From: Dimorphilus gyrociliatus
Lineage: Eukaryota; Animalia; Annelida
DNA length: 41,717 nucleotides
Direction of reading: 5' to 3'
NCBI GenBank assembly: GCA_904063045.1
Contig: CAJFCJ010000063.1
Coordinates: 82,378-124,094, forward strand
Shown: one piece after another, positions 5,406 through 41,717 of the stretch
Layout: each line of letters starts with the position of its first letter
How positions within the stretch are numbered: the first letter of the stretch is position 1
Position numbers and translations under genes: made by a program
The notes under the pieces: generated by a model
The model's input: only the letters and a program-made list of their open reading frames with translations
Told to the model about the DNA's origin: nothing
Databases searched by the model: none

Positions 5406-7900
5406 GAATACGACAGAAAACGGCCCCAACAGAAAACGGACCCAACAGAAAACGGCCTCAACTTGAACAGAAAACGGCCCCAACTGGAACAGAAAACGGC
5501 CCCAACTGAGACAGAAAACAGCCACAGGATTCTTCAACCTAAAATATATAAAACAAGAAATGAATTAAATTTTGAAAGTGTGTTTATTTGAAGAGTTGAA
5601 TACATTATGAGACTACAACTTAAAAGATCATGCAATTAAACAACAATTGATTTATTTATTGAGCTACTAAATAAAGTTCAGAACACTTTACTAGAACTTG
5701 TGATGAAGTAATCTCATGCTTTTCAAATCTTTCCCAAATTGAAAATATTTTATTTTGCAGGTTCTTATAAAGCTTTCTTTGGTATCTTAATATCTTCTTT
5801 TCTGATAACATTCTTTGATATGCTGCTATAAGGTCTGCTTCCCTTTTCAATTCATCTATCACAGAATAAAATGAAACATTCACTCCAACATTTCCATTCA
5901 ACCTATTGTGAAATCCCTCAACATCATTATTTGTTCTGATTGCACATTGATAGATAGACCAACATTTTGGTGACCAAACATCATTCAAAATCCAAGTTCT
6001 TTCAAAATAATCAATAAAATCAGCAAGTTTATCAATTGATTTAAGGTAATCCTTAATTTTAATAAACTCTATTGGAATAATGTGAGATGGAAGGAATGGC
6101 AAAGCCATTAGCTGTCTCATTTCAAACCATTGTCCATTTTTTTTGTTGAAGTCTGATGAATAACCAAGCTCCTAAAAAAACAAAATTAAAAATGACTCCA
6201 GTTTGAGTTTTAGGTTGAATAATACCTGAATTTTTCTATAAACTGCTTGATTCTAATGGAATAAGCATCCTGACAGATTTACATTTTCCCAATGATTTAA
6301 TACAGCTTTCCAAACAGCTTTTTCAAAATCCATAACTATCTTTTTTGGTTCCTTATATTGTAGCAGTTGATTAATGCACTTAAAAACAGTGAAATGAATA
6401 TTAAATGCATTTCAGAGAAAATTTCAAGTTGAACTACCTTGAATAACAGATTATATGCTTTTTTCTTTTTTGATGACATGAATGCATATAGAAGAGGAAC
6501 CTGTTTTAATTCACCTTCGTTTTTGAGGAATGAGTGAAATGAAAATAACTGTGTAAATGGGTCCTTAACAATCTTGAAAGTTCCATCTAAGTACCAGACT
6601 TTTGACACTGCAAGTAAGCTAAGTTGTTTTGAAGTGGAAAAAATAATCACTCTTTCATTTTTTTCAAGGACATCTTCCTTTAAGAAATCATCAGGAATGA
6701 AGCAATTATTAATAAGAAAGTTTCTTCCAATAGGTTCATTGGGACGATTTTTTCTTCTATGGTAATTTATCATTTCTTTGCAATTTTCAACTTTTACAAT
6801 ATTTCCCATATTTGCAAAAGGAAGCAGAACATTTTCAGCTATTTGTTTTCCACTAACATTGGTGTCAGTCTTTCCTTTTTGTTTTGCTGTCACTTTCATT
6901 TCAATAATTTGTTTTAAATTTTTTTTGGGGGGGTGAATATGATATTTAGACCCCAAAGAGAAGTTATTATTTCTTTGAACAACACTGGCAGGACATTTCA
7001 TTTTCTTGCTTCTAACTCCACATCTCCAAATTATGGAAGTCTTGTCTTTTCTTTTGACAACAAATGAGTGACCATTAGATACAAGTAATTCTTTGCCTTT
7101 TTGACTTCCTGTAGGGAATATTCTGAATTTACCATTGCTGTCATAGTTCACCTCTGGTATACTTTCAAAGGACTCCTCCATATTGATATCATTCTCATTC
7201 AAATGTAATGTATTTCCATGCAGAGGGCTGCTTTCACTAAGATTATCAACAAGCCTGTACTCTGAATCACAATTCAGTGTTTCAATAAGGGTAACCACTT
7301 CTTCATGATCAACATCCATTATTATATTTTGCACATCTATCTCTTCTCTTGAATGATTTAGATCTATATTTTCAGCATTTGAGACTTTATTGGTAGATTT
7401 ATCTTGTAAAATTTCATCACATTTGCTCAGAATAATTCTGATTCTTTTTTTATCAACACTTGAACATATAGAACATAATCCATCTACAAAAGAAAGAGCT
7501 TAGTTTACATTAAAATCAATTTGGATCTTACCTGATAAACAAGCCCAATGGACTTTATGATGACAAAGTGAACAAACACCTTGCTTCAGCTTATTAATCT
7601 TTTTCTTACATCCAAAACAATATGGTAGCATTGTGGCAAAAATCTCCTTTGAGCTGCTTTAACCTATTGGCAGGAATTTAAAAATAGTGCAAAATATTCA
7701 ACCTCTTAGGAAAAACTGGTGGACAATTTAATATTTTTTCATCCAATATTTACTAACTAATAGAAAAAAATTTTAAATTAACTTATTCTATTCAATTTAT
7801 GAGTATTGTATATTTTGAAATTTTGTGGCTGTTTTCTGTCTCAGTTGGGGCCGTTTTCTGTTGGGTCCGTTTTCTGTTGGGGCCGTTTTCTGTTGATCCC
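5406..7900 (-). mobile_element. Full-length MULE element E1 (2495 bp)
   Basis: Inverted subterminal arrays of AACAGAAAACGGCCCC at 5406-5527 and 7822-7900; ends GAATACGACAG and CTGTTGATCCC; encloses a transposase. Confidence 0.95.
5656..7631 (-). pseudogene. MULE transposase (PHD-like finger, FLYWCH finger, DDE), 4 exons, one in-frame TAG
   Basis: MLPYCFGC..CSLCHHKVHWAC/CSIC; GKELLVSNGHSF..WRC..C..HIH; WYLDGTFK, MDFEKA and RTNNDVEGFH. The three introns splice in frame. GCLFH*NQA carries a TAG at 6253-6255. Confidence 0.9.
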
Positions 7901-8780
7901 TGATACATAGGCTCATATGAAACTTCAATTGTTTATCTCACATTCTACCCTGTTGCACTAACTCTTTATGTTCTCTGATTGAAAAGGAAGTGCCCTATTT
8001 TTTTGAAATATCTTTTCATTGATAATTGAAATTTATTTTAAAGGGGTAAAGATTTTGTTAAAAGTCAACCAAAAACAATTATAGAAATGTACAGTAAGCT
8101 AAATGGCCAGATATTGCTTTGGTAAGAGATGTTTTTATTTCTATAGAAAATCCTTTCTTTTGAGATGATCCATCAGTTTTGAGTACAATTCTTATATCAT
8201 TAACTATTGGTTCTGTATAGACATCCTCCACAGAGTAGTAATGGTGATTAAAAAATCCTTCAAATTTAAAGGAGGGACCTAAAAAATATAAGATAAAAAG
8301 TTAAAAATTCAATGGATATATTTCTTTGTTTTTTTACAGACCATTTGAATTGATAATAGACAATTCATTTCCACATAATTTAGCAGAATTTGAGTTCTGT
8401 GTTATTAAATGAGAATCTTGTTGACAATTTGGTGAATACTCCACACCAAACTTAACAAATCTCTCAAAAAAATACTGAATATAAAGGGAAAAATATAACA
8501 TAGTCAATATTTAACAAAGTGAAGAGAAAACTTGAATTTCTTACCATTTTACATCTTGCATAATGTCTTAATATTAAACTGGTATTTTTTATACTTTGAT
8601 AAGGCTCAAGAGATTTAATAACTATCCTTTCACTCTCACATGACAACTGATAAACTTTATTCTCGTAATCTTTGAATCCAATTGTATACAATTGTATACA
8701 ATTTTCTCTTTTTTATTATCATAATTGGTTTTGGTAATTTTGTTTTTATTTCAATAAAATATGACCTACTGCCTAAAAAT
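7901..8780 (-). pseudogene. Multi-exon CUB-domain gene fragment truncated at the E1 end
   Basis: Spliced exons give FGVEYSPNCQQD..KLCG and IRIVLKTDGSSQKKGFSIEI (CUB signatures). A 10-bp duplication at 8681-8700 shifts the frame. Confidence 0.65.
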
Positions 8781-9009: not shown

Positions 9010-9145
9010 AAAAAAATGGATTTCATTCCTGATGATTTCTTAAAAAATGACATTTATGAAAACAGCAATAGAATCCTTAATTTTGTCAAAATTATTTGTT
9101 ATAGATAGAACTTTCAAGATTGTGAAAGATCCACTCACAAAAGAA
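9010..9145 (+). pseudogene. MULE transposase remnant
   Basis: FIPDDFLKNDIYENSNR and IDRTFKIVKDP match E1 FIPDDFLK and LDGTFKIVKDP. Confidence 0.6.
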
Positions 9146-9234
9146 ATTCTTTAAGGGGTATTTCTGTGCTTCCCAATGGTGATTGATTTAAGAATGCTTG
9201 GATCAATGGTAAGTTTGTAAATGAGTTGTTGATA

Positions 9235-9400
9235 GCCTGTTAAAAATGAACATTTTGAAGATTTTTTGGGTAAGATTTTGGGTGGGGAATGGGTTATTAA
9301 AAATATGCGAGCAATTGATTTGTAATTAGGTGGGTCCAAACTAAGGTTAGGAAGAATGAAGTTCTTAAAACTGGATCCAGGGCTGGGTTAGGGTGAAACC
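9235..9400 (+). mobile_element. Decayed internal fragment of the TTAGG-rich MITE family
   Basis: GCAATTGATTTGTAATTAGG and GGGCTGGGTTAGGGT are shared with 3540-3590, 19100-19130 and 21980-22100. Confidence 0.4.
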
Positions 9401-9722
9401 TCAAAACTGTCTGAATTTTTTACACCTCCATTTGCATTTGGTTGTGAATCTGGCAGTATAATTCAACAGATTTTTTGTGAGTTAATGAGAACAAGAATCC
9501 TTACAGTTATATTACATTCTTAATAAATTAAATAGCATATTTATAGAACTACCTGTAAATCTTTGTTTAGGCTTGACACTCTCAATTCTGCATTATTAAT
9601 CCTATTAATAAGACTAAAGAAGTTCTGACTGACTTAGTGTTGTTATTATTGAAAAATGAGTTAATGAAAAGAATTCAATTGAAATTACACTGATAATCCC
9701 CTAATCAGAATACAATCTTGCT

Positions 9723-11115: not shown

Positions 11116-13639
11116 GGTGCAGTGACATTTCGGCCCAGGACAGTTCGGCCCACTTTTGGACATTTCAGCCCATTTTATGACTTTTTGAGTTAATTATGAA
11201 TTAATTACAATAAATAAGAAAAAGCAAATCAATTTTAAAATTAATAAAAAATATAATAAGTAATATAATATAGTAATTCCAGATATGTAAAATAATTATT
11301 ATAAAATTCAAAATATTTTCAGAATAATGGATACCAGTTTTCCTTATTTCTGAAGTATATTTTACATTGTTTTACAATTTCCTTTTCCTGTTTTGAGAAA
11401 AAGTAGAAAGCATATTTCTTTTCTTCATTTATCATAGAAGCTTCAATAGAAATTACAACATGAATTTGAAAAACTGTTGGAAGTGTGGATTAAGATTTCA
11501 TTGTACACAAAGAAAATTCAGATGCCAGTTGTGCAGACATATTATCATACAAAGTGTTCAAAATGTAAGTAAACTCTGTAACTTTCTCAGGTATAATGCT
11601 ATATCACCTATATATTAAGATGCAGATTATTGTCCTGATTGTCATGATGTCAGCAAACAAAAATTATTTATTAAATTAAAGAAAATAGATAATTATCATC
11701 AGAGTAAATTCATCCAGAATATGATGAAACTGTTGTTAATTTAGAATCATCAATGAATAATACAAGTGAAATGAATACAAATCAGGTAATTTCATTTGTT
11801 CAAAGATATTATTATTTCACCATAAATTTTAACAGTTAAGACTTTCCTTTGACTTCAATTCACCTGAATCACCAAACAATGAAAAAGAGTTGAACTTTCC
11901 TGAACATGACAAGACATGGCAAAGAGAGTTGATATAAGTGATGAAACTTCATTTGAGATGGATAAGCAGTATAACATCATGGAAAAAGAAAGAAAGAGAT
12001 GATTTCAAAATAGTTGTAGGTGGAAGTACAAAAAATAAAGACTTACTTCTACACAAAAACTGTTCATATTCTGTAAAAAGAAAAACTGAAAGTTCAATCA
12101 CCTGGAGATATACTCAGAGATATGCCAAAGCTCCTTGTCCTGCATACATATTACAAAAGGGATCAAAGTTCATTGTAAAAAATGAAAACCATCTTCATAA
12201 ATTGCATAAAAACATAGAAAGTGTTCTTCAATCAAGAATGGACTTAAAAGAAATGGCAACTGAGTAAAAGACCAAAAGATCCAAGACATTTAGATTGAAA
12301 AAAAAAAAAAAAAAAAAACTGAGTAAAAGACCAAAGCATCCAAGACATTTAGATTTTGAAATAAATCTGGATGAAGTTCCAATTGATTTCTTATTGAGAG
12401 ATATAAAAGAAAAGAAAAATCATTGTATTATAATTGGCACAAATCATCAAATAGAATTACTGGAATGTTGTAAAATTTGGTTCATTGATGCAACTTTTAA
12501 AGTTGTCAGAGATCCATTTTATCAACTGTTTTCAATTCATGGATTCTTGAAAAAACATGATGAATATCAACAGGTTCCATTGGTCTATGTTCTGATGAGT
12601 AGCAAGAAGAAAAGCTGTTAAATTGCTGTACTTCAGGTTTGAGATATTTCAGTATTTTTATCACTTTTAATTTATCATTTTTCATTTGAAAATAGGAGAT
12701 AAGAAAATTAATCAATGATAAAACTCCCAGAAAATGTGTGCCTGATTTTGAAAAGGCTATATGGATGGCACTTAAAGAGCAATTTCCCAATTCTGACCTT
12801 CAAGGATGCTCTTTTCATTTCAAACAAGCAGTTTTGAGGAACATACAGGTAGATTAAACAATCATATAAAGAAAATAATTAAATACTTATTTTATTAGAA
12901 ACTTGGATACATTACTGATTATAAAGAAAATGGGTACAAAGGAAAAATGTTACAAAAATTGATGTGTTTGGCATATCTGCCTTCAAATTTTATTGAACAA
13001 ATGTTTGTCCAACTAAAAGAAGAACTTTGTGAAAAGAAATTGTTTACAGATTTGCTTGAATATATAGAAGTAACATTCATGAAAAGCAGTACTTGGCCTC
13101 CTCAATTCTGGTCTGTTTATCAATTAATTGTGAGAACAAACAATCATGTTGAGGCATGGCATTCCAGACTAAACAAAAATTTGAAAATGGATGAGAAATT
13201 TTATTCTCTAATAAAAGAATTGAAAAGAGAAGCTGAATTAGCAGAGATCTTTGAAAAGTTATTGTCTGAAAAAAAGTTGAGAAAAATATAGAAGAAGAAG
13301 TATAAAGATTTAGAATTTAAAATATTGCAGTTGTGGAGTAATTTGAAGAAAGAGAATTGAGTTTGGATGAATTATTGGATAGACTTGTTGATTTAAATAT
13401 CTGTTAAAATTTGTTATTTCTTGTTCTGCATTTTAGTTATTAAACTTAACACTCCTATTTGTAAATTGTTTTTTATATTAAAAAAATAAACATAATTGTT
13501 CACAAAATAAAAATTATATTTGTCATATTTATCAATTCATAAGTACTAAACCTATCTTCAAGTGAGACACAATGCCTTTAGTATGATTACCTTAGAATGG
13601 GCCGAAATGTCCAAAAGTGGGCCGAAATGTCCTGACCCC
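11116..13639 (+). mobile_element. Full-length degenerate MULE element E3 (different subfamily)
   Basis: Inverted GACATTTCGGCCCAC arrays at both ends; PHD-like 5' exon, FLYWCH-like 11938-12267, WFIDATFK, GCSFHFKQA and RTNNHVEAWH; multiple stops and frameshifts. Confidence 0.92.
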
Positions 13640-18125: not shown

Positions 18126-19560
18126 TTAATATTTCAATAAGAAATCCAAATCAGGTGCATTATCAATATCTAATGATTCAATTATGATTGATGTCAGTTG
18201 ATTTTTAGATGTTTGTAATCCTTGAAAAATTGACTTAAATTCTTTTATAAAATATTTCTCATGACTATTTATAGTAATTTGTTGTAATAATTTACATTCC
18301 TTAAGTAAAATACTAAAATTCTTTGTCTGATCACCATTCAGACAACAATTATGAAGAGTAATATTTAAAAGACAATGGGAAGATGATAATAATCCTTGGC
18401 ATATTTTCTCAAATGCTTTATATAATTGATAATCATGAGCAAATGAGAATTCTCTCAGTGACTTGCATTCTTCAGGTAAATCAGCTAATGAATTTCCTTG
18501 TTCTTCATTTAATTCACATTTGAAAACATCAATAAATTCAAGAGATTTAGATGATGATGATTTTAAATGATCAATTATTAAATAATGTTTAACATTTTGT
18601 GGAAGATAAATTTCTTTCAATGAAATACAATCCTTAACTAAAGAATTCAAATCGATATTTTCATTTTCAACAGTTGGAACAGTTAAATTATTAAATTTAA
18701 TAGTTTGAAGGCTTTCCAATGACGCTTTCAAGCCATTACAAATCATTCCAAATCCTTCACCTAATATTCCATTTCCCATACAGAAAAATTTTTCTAATGA
18801 TCTACATTCTTTGAGTAGATCATTTAAATAATATCATCAATACTACAATGAGAAACATTAATTGATAATAGATTATCGGATGATGATTTTAAACTATTAC
18901 ACAATATTTGAAATACTTCTACAGACATAGAATTCATACTTATATCAATATTTTGCAGTTGAGTACATTCCAAAAGAAAATCACTTAAATAGGAAATTTT
19001 TTGACCATTTAGGCAACAGTTTGAAAAATTAATAGATAAAAGTTATCCAGATGACATTTTTAATCTCCCCTAAGGGTTAGTGGTCATGGGAAAGGTTAGG
19101 TACAGCTAAGGGCTGGGTTAGGGTAAAAGCACCAATTTATGGACATTTTCTGTCGCTTCCGTAAATATCTTTTAAATGTTTACAATCTTTAAATAAATTT
19201 GCTAAAACAAAACCCTGATCATCAGTTTCTGAATTAATATGAATTTTTTGTAAAGAATTTGATGAGTTTTTTTTCAATGAATTACAAATTGATTCAAAAT
19301 CTTTGGAATTCAATTTTGGCATTCTTAAATTCAATTCTTGCAATGATTTATATTCATTGAATAGATTTCTTAAAAGTATAACATTTTGAAATGTAAATGA
19401 AGAAAAGTTAATAATTTTCAATGTTTTTGAACATGAATTCAATCCATTAAATATTTTCAACCAATTATCATCATCATCATCTCTAACACTTTTACAGTAA
19501 TTGATATTAATTTCTTTTAAGCATTTACATTTCGTCAATAAATTACCTAATATATCACTT
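18126..19560 (-). pseudogene. RNI-like LRR array (NLR-type), interrupted by a MITE and frameshifts
   Basis: Repeated F..IC.GL.SS..SL..I.F..C.LN units in ORFs 18126-18779 and 19137-19706. Confidence 0.8.
19066..19160. mobile_element. Truncated MULE-derived MITE
   Basis: Ends GGACATTTTCTGTCGCTTCC and is the reverse-complement homolog of 23930-24020. Confidence 0.65.
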
Positions 19561-19966
19561 CCGGTACTAGTAATTAAACAATTGGAGATTGTTAAACTTT
19601 CCAGTGAAACAATTTTTCTTGTAGAAAATCCCAATATAGACGCACGCTGTCTATTTATAGAATACGGTGGAAAACGTTCAAATCCTTGATTCAAAATGGC
19701 CACCATATTCTATAGTTCTGTATATTTACAATACTGATACTGTTGCCTAGAGACACTCCAGTCAAATACATTTCAACTATATAGACAGAGTCTATCTATA
19801 TTGGGATTTTCTACAATTACTGTTTATTATTGAACACTTGATTAAAATTTTACATTTTTCAAAAATAAAATAAAATACAATAAGGAAAATATATAGAAAA
19901 ATTAAATCAATGAATTTTTTTCAATTTCATCTTCATAAAGGAGTTGGTATTTTTTTTGTTTTTTAC

Positions 19967-28075: not shown

Positions 28076-30591
28076 GAATACGACAGAAAACGGCCCCAAC
28101 AGAAAACGGACCCAACAGAAAATGGCCTCAACTTGAACAGAAAACGGCCCCAACTTGAACAGAAAACGGCCCCAACTGAGACAGAAAACAGCCACAGGAT
28201 TCTTCAACCTAAAATATATAAAACAAGAAATGAATTAAATTTTGAAAGTGTGTTTATTTGAAGAGTTGAATACATTATGAGACTACAACTTAAAAGATCA
28301 TGCAATTAAACAAGAATTGATTTATTTATTGAGCTACTAAATAAAGTTCAGAACACTTTACTAGAACTTCTGATGAAGTAATCTCATGCTTTTCAAATCT
28401 TTCCCAAATTGAAAATATTTTATTTTGCAGGTTCTTATAAAGCTTTCTTTGGTATCTTAATATCTTCTTTTCTGATAACATTCTTTGATATGCTGCTATA
28501 AGGTCTGCTTCCCTTTTCAATTCATCTATCACAGAATAAAATGAAACATTCACTCCAACATTTCCATTCAACCTATTGTGAAATCCCTCAACATCATTAT
28601 TTGTTCTGATTGCACATTGATAGATAGACCAACATTTTGGTGACCAAACATCATTCAAAATCCAAGTTCTTTCAAAATAATCAATAAAATCAGCAAGTTT
28701 ATCAATTGATTTAAGGTAATCCTTAATTTTAATAAACTCTATTGGAATAATGTGAGATGGAAGGAATGGCAAAGCCATTAGCTGTCTCATTTCAAACCAT
28801 TGTCCATTTTTTTTGTTGAAGTCTGATGAATAACCAAGCTCCTAAAAAAACAAAATTAAAAATGACTCCAGTTTGAGTTTTAGGTTGAATAATACCTGAA
28901 TTTTTCTATAAACTGCTTGATTCTAATGGAATAAGCATCCTGACAGATTTACATTTTCCCAATTATTTAATACAGCTTTCCAAACAGCTTTTTCAAAATC
29001 CATAACTATCTTTTTTGGTTCCTTATATTGTAGCAGTTGATTAATGCCCTGAAAAACAGTGAAATGAATATTAAATGCATTTCAGAGAAAATTTCAAGTT
29101 GAACTACCTTGAATAACAGATTATATGCTTTTTTCTTTTTTGATGACATGAATGCATATAGAAGAGGAACCTGTTTTAATTCACCTTCTGTTTTGAGGAA
29201 TGAGTGAAATGAAAATAACTGTGTAAATGGGTCCTTAACAATCTTGAAAGTTTCATCTAAGTACCAGACTTTTGACACTGCAAGTAAGCTAAGTTGTTTT
29301 GAAGTGGAAAAAATAATCACTCTTTCATTATTTTCAAGGACATCTTTCTTTAAGAAATCATCAGGAATGAAGCAATTATTAATAAGAAAGTTTCTTCCAA
29401 TAGGTTCATTGGGACGATTTTTTCTTCTATGGTAATTTATCATTTCTTTGCAATTTTCAACTTTCACAATATTTCCCATATTTGCAAAAGGAAGCAGAAC
29501 ATTTTCAGCTATTCATTTTCCACTAACATTGGTGTCAGTCTTTCCTTTTTGTTTTGCTGTCACTTTCATTTCAATAATTTGTTCTAAATTTTTTTTGGGG
29601 GGGTGAATATGACATTTAGACCCCAAAGAGAAGTTATTATTTCTTTGAACGACACTGGCAGGACATTTCATTTTCTTGCTTCTAACTCCACATCTCCAAA
29701 TTATGGAAGTCTTGTCTTTTCTTTTGACAACAAATGAGTGACCATTAGATACAAGTAATTCTTTGCCTTTTTGACTTCCTGTAGGGAATATTCTGAATTT
29801 ACCATTGCTGTCATAGTTCACCTCTGGTATACTTTCAAAGGACTCCTCCATATTGACATCATTCTCATTCAAATGTAATGTATTTCCATGCAGAGGGCTG
29901 CTTTCACTAAGATTATCAACAAGCCTGTACTCTGCATCACAATTCAGTGTTTCAATAAGGGTAACCACTTCTTCATGATCAACATCCATTATTATATTTT
30001 GCACATCTATCTCTTCTCTTGAATGATTTAGATCTATATTTTCAGCATTTGAGACTTTATTGGTAGATTTATCTTGTAAAATTTCATCACATTTGCTCAG
30101 AATAATTCTGATTCTTTTTTTATCAACACTTGAACATATAGAACATAATCCATCTACAAAAGAAAGAGCTTAGTTTACATTAAAATCAATTTGGATCTTA
30201 CCTGATAAACAAGCCCAATGGACTTTATGATGACAAAGTGAACAAACACCTTGCTTCAGCTTATTAATCTTTTTCTTACATCCAAAACAATATGGTAGCA
30301 TTGTGGCAAAAATCTCCTTTGAGCTGCTTTAACCTATTGGCAGGAATTTAAAAATAGTGCAAAATATTCAACCTCTTAGGAAAAACTGGTGGACAATTTA
30401 ATATTTTTTCATCCAATATTTACTAACTAATAGAAAAAAATTTTAAATTAACTTATTCTATTCAATTTATGAGTATTGTATATTTCGAAATTTTGTGGCC
30501 GTTTTCTGTTCTGATTGGGGCCGTTTTCTGTTCATTTGTGGCCGTTTTCTTTTGGGTCCGTTTTCTGTTGGGGCCGTTTTCTGTTGATCCC
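28076..30591 (-). mobile_element. Full-length MULE element E2 (2516 bp), near-identical to E1
   Basis: About 20 substitutions versus E1 by eye; differs in the right subterminal array. Confidence 0.95.
28326..30301 (-). pseudogene. MULE transposase of E2, inactivated
   Basis: Same TAG as E1 (28923-28925), an extra TGA at 29513-29515, and LDGT changed to LDET. Confidence 0.9.
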
Positions 30592-30868
30592 ATGTTTTCA
30601 GTAGTGTTCTTGTGACCCAATTACCTTTTTAGAATAAAATTAAATTTCCTTATAGATTCAATAAGATAAAAATGAAAATAGTTACCATCGGAGACAGGCA
30701 TCAATGCAAACATCACCATCACAACTAACAATATATTCTTTGTCTTCAACATAATTGCAGTTTTCCAGATATACAGTTCTCCTTTCAATGAAGGTTATGG
30801 TTTTAATTTCTTATAAGCACTACTCGAATGGTTTATATTGTTGCTAGTGGAAATAGGAAGTTGTAGTT

Positions 30869-30880
30869 TACGCATGCGCA
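30869..30880. promoter_or_regulatory. NRF1/ewg-like motif TACGCATGCGCA upstream of the Roco ATG
   Basis: One mismatch to YGCGCAYGCGCR, about 60 bp 5' of ATG 30939, in CpG-poor DNA. Confidence 0.35.
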
Positions 30881-30938
30881 AACCTATTGTTTTCCTTTAG
30901 AGTTGAAAGATAAAACTGTGTTAAAATTTGTTTTAGTT

Positions 30939-31540
30939 ATGTGCGATAAATTAAGGAAAGATATTCAAGTTGCCTTGAACAATATAATATCATCTCCCAT
31001 TGTGAAAGAAAGATTTTTAGCAAAATTACCATATCAATATGTAAAGGATATTGCAATTTCAGTAAGTTTTCCCTTTTTCGAATAAACTTCTCTTTGAATT
31101 TATATCCCCTTTGTAAATTATAGATTTTAGAAACAACTCACCTTAACAACATCTTTTCAAAAGAAGATTTGAAATTTAAAATTGATGTAAATAATCACAT
31201 TTTTTTAGAAGGGGAAGGGGAAGAAGGTGCAGAAGATATTTATGATTTTCTTCACCTTATCTTTCATCTTCCCTCTAAGCCAAAACTAATTGAAATATTG
31301 AAAAATTTCTGTAGACTTTTGATGAAAAAATTGAATTTTTAGAAAAGATAATCAATGCAGTTGGTCAGTTTTTCTTTTTCTTCAATTATTTAAATATTTT
31401 TAAAGAATAACACAGAAAATTTTCATTTTTTAAAAATAATAAGGTAAAGAATTTCAAGAATCAGATTTTGTTCATGCAAAAGACATTATTTCCGGAATAA
31501 ATACTGAAAGAACTCTAAGGTTTTTGCAAATGTTAACAAA
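30939..31540 (+). other. IFT54/TRAF3IP1 (MIP-T3)-type N-terminal calponin-homology domain (exons 1-4)
   Basis: QVALNNIISSPIVKERFLAKLPYQYVKDI, DEKIEFLEKIINAV and DIISGINTERTLRFLQML align colinearly with the IFT54 N-terminus as recalled ([61 protein letters not shown]). Confidence 0.75.
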
Positions 31541-34500
31541 GATTCAAAGAAAAACAAATACAGAGAGAAAACAATCTTTTGGTAAACAAAATGATGACAA
31601 ATTTAGACTGGTTAACAGATCAATTCTAAAACTCTTTATTGCAGATGAAATGAATACAACATCACCTAAAAGAGGTAAAATCGGCGAAACAATAGACAAT
31701 GAGTGTTTAGTACATAAAAACAGGTTACCTATGAAATTATTATTTTCCCAAAGTAGACAGGTTAATACTGAAATATATTTCTACTGCAATAATTTCAACG
31801 GATCTTCACTTAAACACTTTCTCTTTTTATCTCTTAGAATCCTTTATATAGAATGAATAATGACAACGAAACCGTACAAATGAATACAATAGAACTGGAA
31901 AATGTAGGCTTTATTAATGATTATTTCTTTTGCTTAATCACTCAAGTAAAAGGATTAATTAAGGAATTTAATGAAGTAGTATCTTTATTGAAGTTATAGT
32001 TATTACACTTTTAAATTATATTATCATTTGACAGTTGCCATGGATACCTTATTCAGTTAAATTGAATAAATGTCAGAGTATTACTGATTGGTCAGTATTC
32101 TGGTTGTATAAATTAGATAATAAAAATCTTGTGGATAGATCAAAGATATTGAGAAAGGTATTGAAAAAATTGATAAAATATTTACATTTTAAATAATACA
32201 AGCAAATTACAAAACACTTTTTTTTCATTTATAGATTTTTTGTTTTGATGATTGTATTTCATTGAGCAACTGGACATTTGAAACTTGTGTAAATTATATG
32301 AAACAAATACAAATTGATAGTAATAGTACTTCAACTCTTTGGAATTTTGAAAAAATGCCACCAGGAGAATGTATATCATTAATTTATCAATTATCACAAA
32401 ATGTTTCTGGCAATTTAGGAGCTGTTAATCTCTATTTAAATCCGTCTGTTAATCCAGTTTATGGAGAAGATAATATGATATTTACAGAAAAAAGTTAGGT
32501 TTCCATTATTTTTTTTATACATAAAAATAATTCTCTCTTTCTCCTCCTTCTTCTTCTTCTTCTTCTTTTGAAATTAGTTACGCTCAACACTGATGAAAAT
32601 CATACAGACTTTTTAAATCATAAGAAAGCGCTTATTATTCATTTCCATAGTTTGTATGAACAAAAAGAAAGATCTTATGAAAGAATTTTCCAAAGAATTG
32701 ACTTTAAGTCATTAATAACAAGACAAAAAATTGATTTTTCTACAAATGTTTTCAACTATTGGAAAATGAATGATTGGACTTTTTACGATTGCTATGAGGT
32801 AAAATTTTATAATTGACCTTGACCTATAATGTAAGTAATTGATGGGATTTATCTTATTACAAAATTTTAGGATTATGTACATCTTGTATCTCCAAAGAGA
32901 GCAATTTTTCTCATACCATTTAATTTAAATTATAATGAAGAGAACCTTTCCAAATATTTTCTAGATGTCATTATTCAACTTTTACAAATGGTAACATTCT
33001 GTATTTTGACACAATTTTTTAAAAAATTTCGTTTTTTTGTTTGTTATAGAATCTCAATCCACAAACTCTACCAGTTATTATTTTTATAGGATTCAATACT
33101 AATATAAATGAAATATCAGCTACATATGCCCTTATTTCTATTATTGAATCTTTTATAAAAGACTTTCAGAATACTATAATTGAAAAGTCAAGGTATAGAT
33201 TGTTAAAGTTATTTTAAGTAGAAAAAAACACCAATTTTTATCTTTATAATAAAAGTGGTCCAAAATTTACAAAGTTAAATTTCAATGAACAAAATAACCT
33301 ACACAATTTAATGGCTGTAAACCAGTTGTTAACAGAACTAAAAGCAAATCTTGAAGATGATAATTCTCGTATTGTTTCTTTCCTAAATATTGATTCTAAA
33401 AATAGTAACGAGGTTAAAGTTAAACACTTTCCTTTTTAGTTTATTAATATATTATTAATGGTTTTCCATTTTTTCCCTTTAATTAGAATTCAGTTGAAAA
33501 ATTATTACTTTTGATGTCAGAAGCATTCGAACAGGTTTCAACTAGCAATCAACAATTTAATGTAAGGGTTTTAATTAGAGTGTTTAAATTGTGATTAAAG
33601 TCTCTACAAAGCTATTTTCACTTCTTTATAGTATACAAATGATGTTATTAATGGATTTATTGAAAGAATTGATAATCTATTAGAGAAAAAACAAGAATTT
33701 TTAAGTATAACTCAACTTACAAAAGAATTAAATATTGAAGGTAATTCTGTAGTAATTAGACAAGAAATCATTTATTATTAAAGTCTCCTCTTCACCTTTG
33801 ATTATCACAGATCTAGTTTGTTTGGAAAAAAAGTATCAAGTAAAGAAAATATACCAATTTCCATATCTTAAAATATTGAAATTATGTCATACATTAGTTA
33901 GTGTGTTTTTTTTTTCAATTTCATATTTTCAATACTTTTTACCTTTTTCATTCAAAAAATCCAGGGACTTTTAATACTTTTTAAGAGTTTTGGTAGTGAA
34001 GAATGGTTTATAGCTAATCCGAAATGGTTTGCTAATTTAGTACAAAATTTACATACCGTATCGGAAGATTGCGATTATCGTGTTGAAGATGACCTATTCT
34101 TTCTTCACAAGTCGACAAAAGTTTGCCTAAAAGCTAAATGGTATTTTTCAACAATTCCATCAAAATCAGTAAGTTTTTAAGTACTAAACTCTTGCAACGT
34201 TTTCTTTTTATAAAATAAAAAATAATCAAAATTCAGGATATTTTTGAAATTATTTTTGGGATTGAATTAGCTCTAACATTGCCATCTACTTCTTTATTAC
34301 TTCCCCTTCAATTATCATACTGCGAAAAGGAAATGACCAAGTTAATGGAGGTAGTAGATTTTTTTTAGGCAAAAGGTGATTTTTTTGTCTAAAAAGTGTG
34401 TAAAATTTGTGTTTAACTCTTAAAAGGATAACAATGATATTGCTCAAGTTTCAATGATCTACACATTTAAAACAAAATTAAGCGAATTGGCTCATTGGAG

Positions 34501-35879
34501 AATTATCTATTATATAAATTTACTTTTCTGGAAAAACGAAATAAATACGACTATTAGCGACCTCTATTACAATTGGATAACATTTTACGACGGACCGGCT
34601 GAAGCTTCTATATGTTTCAATGATGATGAATGTAAATCTATAAAGATATGTTGTAGAATTTTAAAAAATGAGAATTCTCCATCAATACTTGCACATTTAT
34701 TAAAGCAAATTGAAACAGCTGTTGAATATTCATTAAAAATTTCATCAGTCTACTTCTCAGTGAGTAAAAAATGTTTACTTTTCTCTATTTTGACAATCTA
34801 ATGGTAATATTTAATTTTCAATACTAGAAAATTCTATTTACTCCATGGGGTAATGTGTTAATTGAACCAGAATCTAATGATACTTACTCAACTGAATATT
34901 TGAAAAATAATTTAAATTTTTGTAAGTTAAATTTAAATTTTCAAATTAAATTTAATTTTATTTCTCTTTTTTTTTTAAATAGTCAATAATTTCAATGTAT
35001 ATTTTGAACATGAATTACATAATATCTATGAAATTGGCTGTGTTAATAAGTGTAATTTAAGAAGGCAACACTTTTTATGGAAAATGCATAAACAATTATA
35101 TCCAACTTTTAAAAATGAAATATTGTTTGAAGAGGAAGGAGATATTGTTTGTAATTTAGATGAAATTTTACAAACTTCCACTCTGTGTAGTAATATGAAT
35201 CCAGTCAATTTCTATTCAATTACATTAAGAAATTGTTCAAATTTAAAATTTGAATTAGCGTAAGTCAATTAGAGATTATTTTAAAAAGTTATTTGAAAAT
35301 ATATTCATTTATTTAAAAATTTCTAGTAAGGACAACTATTCTATAGTTTTCAATTCTGATGAGAAGAGAATTTATAAGAGTACTTCTAATGGTATTGAAA
35401 AATTATTTGATTTTGACGTTCAACAATTTTCTGCTCTAACAATAAAATTTATGCCCAGCTATGATCAACGAGGCTCTTACAAAACGGCTTATAAAGTCTA
35501 TTTTCTATTTATAGAAACATATTTAAATTTCAAATGTCTTACAATTATTTCTTTGCTAGGCTTTGAATACAAAGCTTAAACTTTATATGGACAATATCTT
35601 CATTGGAAATTTGTCAGAACCGGAATTAGAATTTACACTAAAGTTTCATAATGCGGATAAAAATTTAATAATTGATTTTACATATGCACCTGTAAGTTAT
35701 TCATTTGTGATTTTAACCTTTTATCTTCCTTTCTCTCTCTTCCTAACAGAGACAAGAAATGAAACATTCACGAAATGCGTTAGAAGTAGGTCAAAAATTA
35801 ATAAATAATGGACATATTTCAACTGTTGGTATGTTTAAAATGAGTATTTAAATAAAAGTGTTAGTTTGAATTAAAAAAT

Positions 35880-35919
<40 letters not shown>

Positions 35920-38900
35920 ACTGTCTTCCTAATAGAAAGTATCTCAGAAAAGAGAAAATTAATAGTAATATCAAGAAAAAGAATATTTCTACCAGTTTCT
36001 GAAAATTTTAAATCAATTGAATATTGTCAAGTTAGTTGGGAGAATTTAACAGAATTTCAACAATTTTTTAAAATATATTCAATTCAAGAAATGGAGATAC
36101 TTGGTTTGAAAAATTACTTAATTAATTAATTAATTTTTCTATCATAAAAAATTATTATCTTATAGAAAACTTCAAGGATTATTTAAATCTTTACGATTTT
36201 CAACCAGTTCCTGATATTTGGTTTGGGAAAATAATGAGTGCAAAGTCATCAGCAGATATTCTATCAACTTTAGCTGTTGATAGTGCAGTATGTTTCAAAA
36301 ATAGTGTTACATCATCTGGTAGAGATACATTTTCAATTTTTATCATTGACAAACTACTTTTAACCTTTAATTGCATTTTTTAAACAATACCAGGTTACAT
36401 TTTTCAAGAAATCTCAAAGATGACACGAGTAATTGGAAAAACTAGATTCAAAGTTTCTAACACGCTAGTAGGGATAATTTTCCCCCAAGAGCTAAGAAAT
36501 GATTCATTTATCTATTTAAATGAATTTGTTGATTATGATAAGATGACAGCCTATATTATCTGTTCTATGCCTTCAGGCCAAATGTTAACTGCTGAAAACC
36601 CTAGTCACATATTGAAAAAATCGGCTAAAACAATTTCAAAAGTGCATTGCCAAGAACATCTTGAACTATATACATTATACATTTTGACTAGATGGTTAAA
36701 TATTAATGATAAGAATGTAATAATCTCATTTAAGGACACGGCAAAAATAGCTTTTTCACTTTATTCTCTGTTTTTCTTTTTGTAGTTTGTCACTAATATT
36801 GAATCAAGTCAACTCGAATTCTATTTTTCATTCTTGATGAATAAATATTCAAATGATCGAATTATTGAATATTTTTCAAACTATGAAACAAGCAAATCAG
36901 TTGTTGAGCAAGTATGATAAAATTTTCCATTCTCTTATCCTTTTTGTATTCAATTATAATAATAAATGATTCCATTTTTTCAGGTTTTAAAAGAATCTTT
37001 TCAAGTTGATAATTTATTAGGAACACTGGATAATTTAAAAACAACATTTACGTGTTATCTTCATGAAAATGCATTGCCAACAACAAAAAATGAAAGACAG
37101 AAATATTTGCAATTACTAGACAATGATAAGATCCAAAATGTAAAAAGAGATTTCCTGAAAGAGAATAATTGCCATTGGTAAATAGTTTTCAATTACTTTA
37201 GTGATTAAAGTCTCTTCCTATTCTATTATATTTTACAGTTTTAAATATTTAACAAAATGGCGTATTATCAATAATAACATAAGAACGGAAGAGGAAGATG
37301 GTGAAGATGATGGAGGACTATTTGAAAATGTTGAAAAAATGCACAGATTAAAGGATATTTACTTGTTAAAGTGTAATATTCAAACAGCTTTAAAACATGT
37401 TGATAGGATTGCATATTCTATTGAAAATTTTCAAATTATCAAGAGTCCTATCAAGACTATCCACCCTTCAATTGGAAAATGTTCATTAATAACTACTTTA
37501 CGCTTTGAAAATCTTCTACTATCAGACCTACCAATGGAATTGTCCAATCTAACTCTTTTAAAATTTTTATATCTTACGGGAAATTTATTTGAAAATGTTC
37601 CAAAAGTGATCAGTCAACTTTCAAATTTAACACAATTAAATCTAGATGCAATCAATTTCACACCATTTCATTCAAAGATACTAGAAACTGATATAGTATC
37701 GCTTGAAGAGTGGAAATATACCTACAACGAAAATTATTCTCAGTTGAGTAGTGTTGGATTTGATGAAGGAAGTATGATGAAACTCTTCAAGGAAATCGCA
37801 AGTGATGATAGTTTAAAAAGTAGAGATGAAATTCAAGAATTTCATGCAGTTCTTTATAAAAAACTACCTAGAATTACTTCTTGGAATGTTTTGGAAAATC
37901 TACATAAACAATCATTCAAAATACTTGTTATATTAAATTTAAAATATACCAGTTTTCAAACTTTGGATGATAGTATTGAATATTTGGAGAATTTACATAT
38001 TTTAGACATATCCTTTAATTTACTATTAGAAGAGATTAGCCCAAAAATCGCTTATCTTCCACTACAGACACTATATTTAGAAAATTGTCCATCATTGAGA
38101 ACACCTCCAAAGGTAATAGCAGTCAAAAGTCTAAAACATATACAAAACTATATGAGAGCTTTAGACAAGGGTTATGTATCTTGTAAAAGAACAAAATTAA
38201 TGCTTGTCGGTCTTGGAGGAGGTGGAAAAACAAGTTTAATGACTTCACTAACAGAAAATAATCAGGAAGAAAGTGAACAATTGGTAAAAAGTACTAAAGT
38301 TACAGATGGAATTTGTATTAGAAAATGGCTTGTTCAATCTATTGAATATTCAATATGGGATTTTGCAGGACAAACTGTCTATTATAATACTCATCAGTTC
38401 TTTTTATCAAATAGAGCCGTATATTTTTTGGTATGGAATGTTAGATCTGGAGAGGAGCATGCTGGTTTAAAATTCTGGTTGAATTCTATAAAATGTCATG
38501 CTCCTAAAGCACCTGTATTCATTGTAGGAACTCACATTGATCAGGTATTTTTCATACAGCTGCAATTAGGTCTAACTTTTTTTAACAATGAAATTACAAT
38601 GACGTTAGGTTGAAAAATCTGAATTACCAACCATCAAATATCAAGAAAAATATCCACAAATTAAAGGATTTTATAATGTCTCTTCACTAACCAAAAAAGT
38701 TTGTTTGTTCACATTTTTAAATGATAACTTTTTAAGAAACTTAAATTTTACAAAAATAAGGGTCTTAACGAATTAGTTGATGGTTTAATTAACATAACTA
38801 TTAACGAAAAATATATGAATGAGAAAATACCAAACTTTTGGTTAGATTTTGAAGAAAAATTATACAAGTATGCAAAAAAGAAATTCAAGTATTGAAATAT

Positions 38901-41717
38901 ATAAGAATATTAACTTTACCTTGAACAGAGTTAGCAAAACTTTAAATATAATCTCTATAGAGGAAGCCATCGGATTTGCTGAAGAAACTGGTATAATTGA
39001 TAAGGCTGAGGTTGATATTAAAATATTATTACATAACTCAATGATTCACTCTCTCTTCTAGTTTTATCAAGCAGTTGAATTTCTTCACGAATTAGGATCT
39101 ATTCAATACTTTCAAAATGAATACTTAAGGAAACAAATCATTATAAATCCTCAATGGATTGTTGATGTAATGGCTTGCGTTGTTTCCGTTCAAGAGAATT
39201 CAATAAAAGTTTGTATATAGGCCTAATTAGGAGGTATTTTTCATGCCGATATTCTTTTATTTTTAATCTAGAATGGAAAATTATTGCATGATGATTTGAA
39301 CAAAATTTGGCCCAGTGAGTCATACTCTAATCTTCACAAATGGCTTCTACGTTTAACTGAAGAGTTTGACTTAACATTTTCGTTGAAGAATGAAAGAGCA
39401 AGTTTAGTTCCCTGTCTTCTTCCTGATATTGAACCAGAGGTAAATGCATAGAATGTTTTAAAAATGATGTCTTTGAAGGTGACTTCAATGTTATAGAATG
39501 CTTGGGAAAAAGAATCTTTAAAGGAAGGGGAAAGTGAAACCAAAATGGTATATAAGTTTGACTACTTGCCTTTTGGATTATTTAACAGAGTCCAAGTTAG
39601 ATTATTTGAGTATGGTGATGAGTTTCTGATATGGAAAACTGGCTCTTATCTCACGAAAAATGGCCATAGAGGTATTTTAAAGAGAAAAAGGTATATAATC
39701 ATTTTTCTCACATGAATCAACAAGTTTATCTTTTACTTTTGTTAGCTCTTCAAAAATTCTTATCAAAGTTAGAGGATTTAAACCCGAAAATGTCCTCTTT
39801 CTCGTCCATGAAGTACTTGAAACACTAATTGCTGAATCTTTTCAAGGAGTTGAATTCAATTTTATGACGCCTTGTCCTGAATGTATTTATCATAAAATAC
39901 AACATCCTAGTATGGTTGAATCCTGGAGAATAAGAAAAGCTATGCAATTAAAAATTCCTTTTCTACAATGTACTCATAATTTTCATACTGTGTCTATAAC
40001 ACAACTTCAAAGTGAGTTTTGAGTTGTTTCAACATGCTAACTCTTGACAAAAAACTCTTCACTATAGATATGTTACCTCCTGAGAGCAGTGAGGAATTAG
40101 ATATGCATCTGCAAAATGCTGTTAGAGAATTAAAGAAAATTCAATTAAGGCCTATAAAAGATGTTTTAATGTTATATTGTTTGGCCGATGTTCCTTCAAA
40201 TGAGTCGGAAAGTTGTAATCATATCTCCGCATTGAGAATAAAAAATGAATTGGAAAAAGCTGGCTTTTATGTGTAAAATTCAAAAAAAAAAAAAGAAAAA
40301 TTTTTGATATTTTAAATTAAAAAAAATTACTTTTTCATTATCAGGAAAATGTTTAATGATTCTTGTGAAAATTACGTTGAAGAGGCGATATCTTCACTAA
40401 AATCTACACAAGTAGTACTCACACTGATGACAGATGATTTCATTAAGAATTCAACTTGTAGAAATTTATTCATTTATACAAAAAAGAATTTAGCTAAACA
40501 GAATCAGTTAATATTAATTAAAGAGAGCGATAAATGGAAAAAACATACAGATATTGGTATGCTGTGCTCAGATGATGTAAATATTTTCATTTAAATATCA
40601 ATTGCCTTTTACTTATATTTAAAAACTAATGATTTATCCATTTTCTCTCTCTTCTTCCTTCCTTCTCCTAACTTTTTTAGATATACATAAACATGCAAAA
40701 TGTTGAGAAATTTAGCGCAAAGATGAACGATTTGAAAAATTCGTTAAGTGTCAATTCAAAACCAACAAAATGGCCGCCGTGTTTTATAAGTTATTGTTGG
40801 AGTAATTCTCAAATGGCAATAAATAAAGGGACTAAAATGAATAAAAAAGCACTTGGTAAAACTGATCCAAGGTTATTAAAGGATAAACTTGAAGAAGCTG
40901 GAATTAATTGTTGGATGGATATTGAACAAGTAAATAGAGGTGGTTTATTTCAAGATATTGCTGAAGGCTTAAAAAAGGCTAAAATTGTTGTAGCTTGTGT
41001 ATCAGATGAGTACATTTTATCTAAAAATTGCCAAATGGAATTTCGTTTTGCATCTCTAACATTAAGATTACCAATTATTCTTGCAATTGTTGGAACTGGT
41101 AAAAATTGGATTCAATCCGAAATTGGTATGATATCTTTATCATATCCAAGAGTTAATCTTCAAGAAATGGATACCAACATTGTAGAAGTTGTTAATCTTG
41201 TCAAGGAAAAGATTGGTACAGAAGAATTAGATGAAAATGTCAGAATTGAAAAGGAGATTCATCATGAAGAATTTACAGAATTATTAGAATTAGCTGAAAG
41301 AAAATTACTAAGGCAATTGGCAACTTTACAAAATCTATCAAGAGGATTCAATTTTCCTCATATTCCAATATTAGATTATTCAACAAATTCAACTGAAAAT
41401 ACTACAAATCGATATCGTTTTGTCTTCCTTTGTGAGTGCGATCAGGTAAACAATTTTCAAACTCAATTAAAAATCAACAATTTTTTTAATTTTTTATTAT
41501 CATAGGGTTGGCATTTACCTGACAATCATCAAAGTATTCAATGGAATGTTCCATTTGAAAGTAGAGAAGCTGAAAAATATATGACAGAATGGTCTGGTTA
41601 TTTAGTTAGAATTTACGCTATTCTCCAACACAGTTCAATTCCATTGTTAGTGTTTAAAAATAAAGAAAGAAGTGATTTTATTGAGCAGATGCAATCAAAA
41701 TTAATCAGAAAAAATAA
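30939..41717 (+). CDS. Giant Roco-family protein: CH(IFT54-like), pseudoRoc-COR, unknown, LRR, Roc, COR, TIR-like, TIR; runs off the window
   Basis: About 38 exons join in frame via GT-AG introns with no stop found. P-loop GLGGGGKTS (38209-38235), WDFAG, THID, COR motifs FLHELG..INPQW and YKFDYLPFGLF, and TIR CFISYCWS..CWMD..VSDEY..SKNCQMEF. The ATG assignment is less certain than the rest. Confidence 0.9.
32579..34759 (+). other. Degenerate Roc-COR module
   Basis: Colinear self-similarity to the intact Roc-COR at 38185-39990; no P-loop or DxxG. Confidence 0.7.
35885..35915. repeat. (CT)n microsatellite (intronic)
   Basis: Read directly. Confidence 0.9.

Follow-up and report, generated by a model that had tools for sequence, protein, structure and literature searches.

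A predicted IFT54-type calponin-homology domain at the N-terminus of a Roco-TIR protein of Dimorphilus gyrociliatus

The calponin-homology (CH) domain of the MIP-T3 type is, to our knowledge, normally found in one protein per genome, IFT54 (TRAF3IP1/MIP-T3/DYF-11). MIP-T3 reportedly tethers TRAF3 to microtubules, an observation ascribed to Ling and Goeddel in 2000. Among the Roco proteins, LRRK2 associates with microtubules. Background on the tethering of TRAF3 by MIP-T3 is available in PMC4617596 and PMC2268012. The CH domain of mouse IFT54 binds tubulin and microtubules through a basic patch composed of R18, K25, K29, R33, K64, K66, K69, and R94, and the triple K64/66/69E mutation abolishes the binding to tubulin (PMC4818760). 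Within IFT-B2, tubulin binding is a property of the IFT54 CH domain that is not shared by its two counterparts, those of IFT38 and IFT57 (Taschner et al. 2016, PMC4818760), which bind IFT80 and IFT172 (PMC4818760).

The gene described here lies on the + strand of a 41,717-nt stretch of DNA (the window) from Dimorphilus gyrociliatus, a small marine worm. Like IFT54 (PF10243; 2EQO, 5FMU, and 5FMT), its product is predicted to begin directly with a full-length CH domain (about 100 residues) that shows the same conserved core motifs. Unlike IFT54, the worm CH domain is not followed by the MIP-T3_C coiled-coil body (the IFT20-binding part) but stands at the head of a Roco-TIR protein over 2300 residues long, and it has lost five of the eight basic-patch residues. 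The protein shares with the Roco family (LRRK1/2, MFHAS1/MASL1, DAPK1, and the invertebrate Roco-TIR proteins) the tandem LRR, Roc, COR-A, and COR-B, with intact P-loop, DFAGQ, and THID motifs, whereas it differs in having no detected kinase domain, a C-terminal TIR, and the N-terminal IFT54-type CH domain. By analogy, it may be compared with MIP-T3/TRAF3, where a CH domain of this family is likewise linked to a signalling component of the innate-immune type; the coupling there is non-covalent, via the MIP-T3 C-terminal coiled coil, while in the worm protein the CH domain and a TIR-bearing GTPase are fused covalently. The microtubule-associated CH-like domains of CEP44, CLUAP1/IFT38, IFT57, and CH_2/SPEF1 are neighbours of the worm CH domain in protein-language-model feature space, but Pfam gives the worm domain only MIP-T3.

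Gene structure, transcript, and domain order

When the LRR-Roc exon was searched against 1.84 billion representatives, a 100% match was obtained to one public protein of 2321 aa (P0001), which a word search identified as DgyrCDS14676 of D. gyrociliatus. The Pfam domains precomputed for it are PF10243, Roc, COR-A, COR-B, and TIR_2. When mapped to the window, this model starts at the ATG at 30939, as does ours, and the CH domain is already joined there to the Roco body. The window is AT-rich (about 28% GC), and the introns are short, with GT..AG ends. The features of the gene are given below, where "the paralogue" is DgyrCDS14632.

30835..30885, + strand: conserved block upstream of the gene, a probable part of the promoter (about 80% identity to the equivalent position of the paralogue, with diverging flanks)
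30939..31061, + strand: exon 1, start ATG and CH residues 1-41 (Pfam MIP-T3 match; PDB matches to 2EQO and 5FMU only; RNA joint 31061>31124)
31124..31186, + strand: exon 2, CH residues 42-62 (RNA joints at both ends; colinear with the paralogue)
31187..31314, + strand: intron 2, 128 nt, GT..AG (RNA joint 31186>31315; partly coding in the public model)
31315..31363, + strand: exon 3, CH residues 63-79 (RNA joints; absent from the public model; 75% identity to TFDQKIQLLEKIIKAV of the paralogue)
31444..31581, + strand: exon 4, CH residues 79-112 and a charged tail (RNA joint 31362>31443; Pfam match of the public model to profile position 110)
31645-31760, 31838-31975, 32035-32157, and 32235-32493, + strand: exons 5-8, linker with no recognised domain (sole chain fitting the contig depth bins; no Pfam match)
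32578-32798, 32871-32990, and 33050-33192, + strand: exons 9-11, perhaps a degenerate Roc-like region (contig record 1 covering 145 nt of exon 9; weak Roc similarity of exon 10)
33256..36902, + strand: exons 12-27, middle region without a Pfam domain (one spliced contig of 3925 nt, record 2; frame continuous with exons 1-11)
37239..38544, + strand: large exon with LRRs and the live Roc GTPase (Pfam Roc 80.6 bits, LRR_14, LRR_8; record 2 reaches about 38376)
38609..40013, + strand: COR-A and COR-B exons (108.9 and 95.1 bits, respectively, on the public model; exon-level matches at 39284-39451 and 39545-39715)
40067..41717, + strand: TIR region (TIR_2 46.9 bits on the ORF at 40693-41505 and 58.1 bits on the public model)

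The RNA evidence consists of the contigs of one public run (X1), the only public run containing the stretch; since these contigs are spliced, they are RNA-derived. The joints 31061>31124, 31186>31315, and 31362>31443, all of them GT..AG, confirm the three CH introns, and the second of these bears out the initial annotation, in which a 128-bp intron at 31187-31314 had been proposed to remove an apparent frameshift. Contig record 1 has a length of 1014 nt and includes the piece 32233-32493. For exons 5-8, all stop-free GT..AG chains between exon 4 and this piece were enumerated, and exactly one (31444-31581, 31645-31760, 31838-31975, 32035-32157, 32235-32493) reproduces the depth bins 137/123/141/58. 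Because the exon lengths in this model sum exactly to the 608 positions of record 1 upstream of the listed piece, record 1 corresponds to the last 46 nt of exon 2, exons 3-8, and 145 nt of exon 9. Of the co-transcription of exons 1-4 with the downstream exons, on which the initial annotation had made its reading depend, this contig shows the stretch from exon 2 to exon 9. The contig of exon 1 overlaps record 1 by about 7 nt.

Record 2 (3925 nt) runs from about 33255 via 15 joints, 12 of which are listed and three of which were worked out from the piece positions, to 36786, and then for about 1335 nt more; by length bookkeeping it ends, on the best model, inside the Roc part of the exon 37239-38544. 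Depth arithmetic (a depth of about 11.2) suggests a third spliced contig that would cover 32725-33192 over exons 9-11. From 30939 to 36902, the exons add up to 4083 nt, or 1361 codons without a single stop, and are separated by 26 GT..AG introns of 58-128 nt, after which the gene continues into the LRR-Roc-COR-TIR part. The CH domain and Roc-COR are therefore placed on one transcript by tiled contigs together with the 1361-codon frame, and not by a single molecule. We regard this architecture and the co-transcription of the CH domain with the Roco-TIR body as almost certain.

Two contig fragments of high depth (at least 24-41) end in loose ends of 255 letters, before 32164 and behind 34686, and the former overlaps intron 7. 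They could represent a transcript of a paralogue, a repeat, or an alternative form.

The order of the domains is the CH domain, a linker of about 210 residues, a long middle region (possibly a degenerate Roc-COR), LRR, live Roc, COR-A/B, and TIR. As in Roco proteins, Roc is followed directly by COR, and the motifs of the live Roc are intact (the P-loop GLGGGGKTS, DFAGQ, and THID). No kinase domain and no MIP-T3_C were matched by Pfam on the public model. It had been noted earlier that the downstream protein is not the body of IFT54, and this agrees with the presence of LRR, Roc, COR-A, COR-B, and TIR_2 in its place. Exon-by-exon Pfam scans of exons 2, 4, 5-12, 16, and 18 gave nothing useful.

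Exons 9-11 (32578-33192) have the look of a degenerate Roc: KLVTLN occupies the site of the P-loop strand, and the live Roc's RAVYFLVWN and APVFIVGTHID have look-alikes in RAIFLIPFN and PVIIFIGFNTNI. For exon 10, alignment to the switch II/beta-5 region of the live Roc gave an E-value of 0.008 in a single comparison, while the similarity of exons 9 and 11, compared exon by exon with the live Roc, was not significant.

Past the TIR, no stop closes the frame before the end of the window (41717), and the true 3′ end of the gene is located outside it. In the public model, the transcript is spliced after YMTE to a two-residue end (CV), and the last residues of the paralogue are CVIC, which resembles a CaaX box.

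Comparison with the RNA revealed wrong splicing of DgyrCDS14676, both in the CH domain and in other places, and showed that the splicing of the CH domain in the initial annotation is correct. Intron 2 is partly read as coding in the public model, exon 3 (31315-31363) is skipped, an in-frame intron 4 of 63 nt is retained, and exons 9-10 and others are missing; the true product exceeds 2321 aa by several hundred residues. The UniRef name of this entry is serine/threonine kinase, yet it has no detected kinase domain. As a practical point, the public annotation of DgyrCDS14676 carries both a wrong splicing of the CH domain and a misleading kinase name.

The conserved block upstream of the gene, about 47 nt in length and 55-105 nt before the ATG, has its counterpart at 5880-5930 of the paralogue's locus (L002). 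Its 25-nt core is unique in the window, where 0 chance matches are expected. The block contains a core CGCATGCGC (NRF1-like) and, on the other strand, a ACTACAAC-TTCC-like motif. An X-box-like (RFX) motif in this block was considered as evidence for ciliary regulation and rejected, the matches numbering 5 against 3 expected. Further upstream, two nearly identical copies of an ORF pair are located at 5656-7334 and 28326-30004 (both − strand), with fragments at 644-997 and 12947-13291 (+ strand). By eye, one ORF of the pair looks like a FLYWCH-type zinc finger fused to a transposase-like part, and the other is a conserved C-terminal ORF; the copies look like a recently active DNA transposon, and one of them is directly upstream of the promoter of the CH gene. 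Two long ORFs at 18126-19706 (− strand) look, again by eye, like leucine-rich repeats of the ribonuclease-inhibitor type (NLR-like), and they suggest a neighbourhood rich in immune-type genes.

Family assignment and putative tubulin-binding surface of the CH domain

Exon 1 alone matches the Pfam profile PF10243 (MIP-T3 CH-like) at profile positions 5-36 (E = 8.5e-4, 19.7 bits), and against the whole PDB it matches only the CH structures of human and mouse TRAF3IP1 (2EQO and 5FMU). Residues 1-340 of the public model score 29.8 bits, above the gathering score of 23.4, although this score belongs to a model that skips exon 3; the Pfam MIP-T3 profile check called for in the initial annotation therefore came out in favour of the family. 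Since the match extends over positions 5-110 of the 113 in the profile, about 100 residues are colinear with the N-terminus of IFT54, close to the 110 aa claimed earlier for TRAF3IP1/IFT54. In the PDB, the public model matches best the CH domain of IFT54 from three organisms: human, mouse, and Chlamydomonas. Exon 4 alone gave no match in the PDB, exons 2 and 4 alone being too short to score. The motifs of the hydrophobic core (LPYQYVKDI, KIxxLEKII, and TLxFLxML) are intact. The CH fold would end near 31544 within exon 4, the remainder of which is the charged tail, and the product of exons 1-4 comprises about 125 residues. On these sequence criteria, exons 1-4 encode a complete CH domain of the MIP-T3/IFT54 family at the N-terminus. 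AlphaFold2 on a six-row alignment (A1) returned an all-helical model with a pLDDT of 43, which is unusable (shallow alignment). A true IFT54 was also sought by a word search with the CH region, restricted to a protein length of 220-700 aa; no match was obtained, and this blank carries no weight.

The basic patch was located by means of an HMMER alignment between the paralogue and 5FMU, combined with A1, which has no gaps. At the positions of the mouse patch, the window gene has S18, R25, K29, Q33, D62, F64, K67, and D92, and the paralogue has K18, Q25, N29, Q33, D62, F64, K67, and D92, so that three and two of the eight are basic, respectively. The substitutions in the window gene include K64 to D, K66 to F, and R94 to D, those of K64 and R94 being charge reversals. 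Thus, two of the three lysines that are jointly critical for tubulin binding are lost, two patch positions are now acidic, and the conserved basic patch of the tubulin-binding IFT54 CH domain was not found. The lysines K58, K60, K67, and K73, adjoining the lost lysine cluster, are conserved in both paralogues. A hand count from the alignments gave a net charge over the aligned span of about −1, as compared with +2 in mouse. The domain belongs to the IFT54-type fold family, but the characterised tubulin surface is largely gone. The initial annotation had proposed that a ciliary tubulin-binding module was recruited to a Roco protein: the recruitment stands, with the PF10243 match and one transcript and frame, whereas a tubulin-binding or ciliary character of the domain is putative here, only three of the eight patch residues being basic.

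Paralogues, selection, and distribution

The paralogue DgyrCDS14632 (P0151; 2553 aa; locus L002) is 58% identical and has the same architecture, PF10243 with Roc, COR-A, COR-B, and TIR_2 and no match to MIP-T3_C. Its model contains the equivalent of exon 3, and the translations of exons 1-4 of the window align to it without gaps, at identities of 63, 52, 75, and 49%, respectively. Its CH domain scores 55.9 bits against PF10243 (E = 5e-15), and in the PDB it matches 2EQO (3.5e-8), 5FMU (4.8e-8), 5FMT (2e-6), and the IFT54 in 8BD7, the E-values ranging to 2.8e-5; the next match after the IFT54 entries is a classical CH domain with an E-value of 0.18.

The three CH introns are located at identical codons and in identical phases in the two genes. 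As the CH domain is shared by DgyrCDS14676 and DgyrCDS14632 with the same introns, it was acquired before their duplication. Over the 111 codons of the CH domain, compared exon by exon, the two genes show an identity of 61%, a dN of 0.22, a dS of 0.93, and a dN/dS of 0.24, a ratio indicating that the domain is kept under purifying selection in both paralogues.

A third paralogue (P0004) is found on CAJFCJ010000013.1 (locus L001). Exons like exons 5-7 lie upstream of its annotated start (7934-8600 and 9103-9496 of that locus), and its public model is therefore N-terminally truncated. CH exons were not found within 10 kb upstream of it by tblastn and motifs; thus, the CH domain is dispensable for at least one family member. 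Further upstream, transposase-like ORFs are present.

Other carriers of the CH domain were sought with phmmer, using the CH domains of both models, and there were none among the 149 other closest LRR-Roc representatives. Within the length range 1277-4062 aa, a word search with the CH region returned only the gene itself, and over long proteins overall it returned only the two Dimorphilus genes. The literature, within a limited coverage, gave nothing on MIP-T3 with Roco, on Roco with a CH domain of the MIP-T3 type, or on Dimorphilus with Roco. CH-Roco-TIR appears to be a new domain combination in a known family, so far in only one species or lineage.

Possible role of the CH domain and its meaning

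The best explanation, which falls a little short of an even chance and rests on analogy, is that the CH domain, acquired before the duplication, would serve as the N-terminal targeting module of a GTPase-controlled TIR signalling protein. It would bring the protein to a microtubule-based structure, be it cytoplasmic microtubules, basal bodies, or cilia, an arrangement resembling that in which MIP-T3 holds TRAF3 on microtubules. That the domain has some targeting or docking role is very likely. Microtubules or tubulin are the most likely single target, although we name them tentatively; the binding surface is remodelled, and therefore the affinity for tubulin is probably weaker, or differently mediated, than in IFT54. 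A more specific version, in which the CH domain would hold a GTPase-gated TIR effector at microtubules or the ciliary base and release it on a change of the Roc switch, is unlikely and likewise drawn by analogy. If true, such hold-and-release would be the sequestration logic of MIP-T3/TRAF3 within one polypeptide and a natural experiment linking Roco proteins to microtubules by a dedicated domain.

The alternative that survives best, possible and only slightly less probable than a microtubule target, is that the CH domain acts in protein-protein docking or in intramolecular regulation without tubulin binding, like those of IFT38 and IFT57, and that it recruits a partner or packs against the Roco core. 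The CH domains of these two proteins bind IFT80 and IFT172, not tubulin (PMC4818760), and the worm domain has lost five of the eight patch residues, including two of the three critical lysines, with two charge reversals; the dN/dS of 0.24 shows that some function is retained. Nevertheless, the nearest family by sequence is the tubulin-binding one, and several of the lysines adjoining the lost cluster are kept in both paralogues.

It is quite improbable that the CH domain is a decaying leftover of exon shuffling without a present function. The dN/dS of 0.24, the core motifs and intron phases kept though the paralogues differ at 39% of the residues, and an open frame whose CH exons are spliced in RNA all speak against decay, even if the eroded tubulin patch, the lack of a CH domain upstream of the third paralogue, and the apparent restriction of the CH-Roco family to one species would be expected of it. 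A gene-model artefact, in which exons 1-4 would form a separate small CH-only gene upstream of the Roco gene, has hardly any probability: the RNA contigs show breaks near 31141-31147, 32722, and 33192/33255, and an ATG occurs at 33311, 56 nt past the start of record 2, but record 1 physically links exon 2 to exon 9, the break at 32722 falls within an exon, 1361 stop-free codons run across every break, and two independent public models and the paralogue have the same N-terminus on the Roco body.

The movement of the CH domain onto another signalling protein and its retention there under selection show that this domain is portable as a module. Should it have kept the ability to bind microtubules, the worm proteins would provide a simple model for the coupling of Roco GTPases to the cytoskeleton, which is relevant to LRRK2, and they would bear on the old link between MIP-T3 and immune adaptors.
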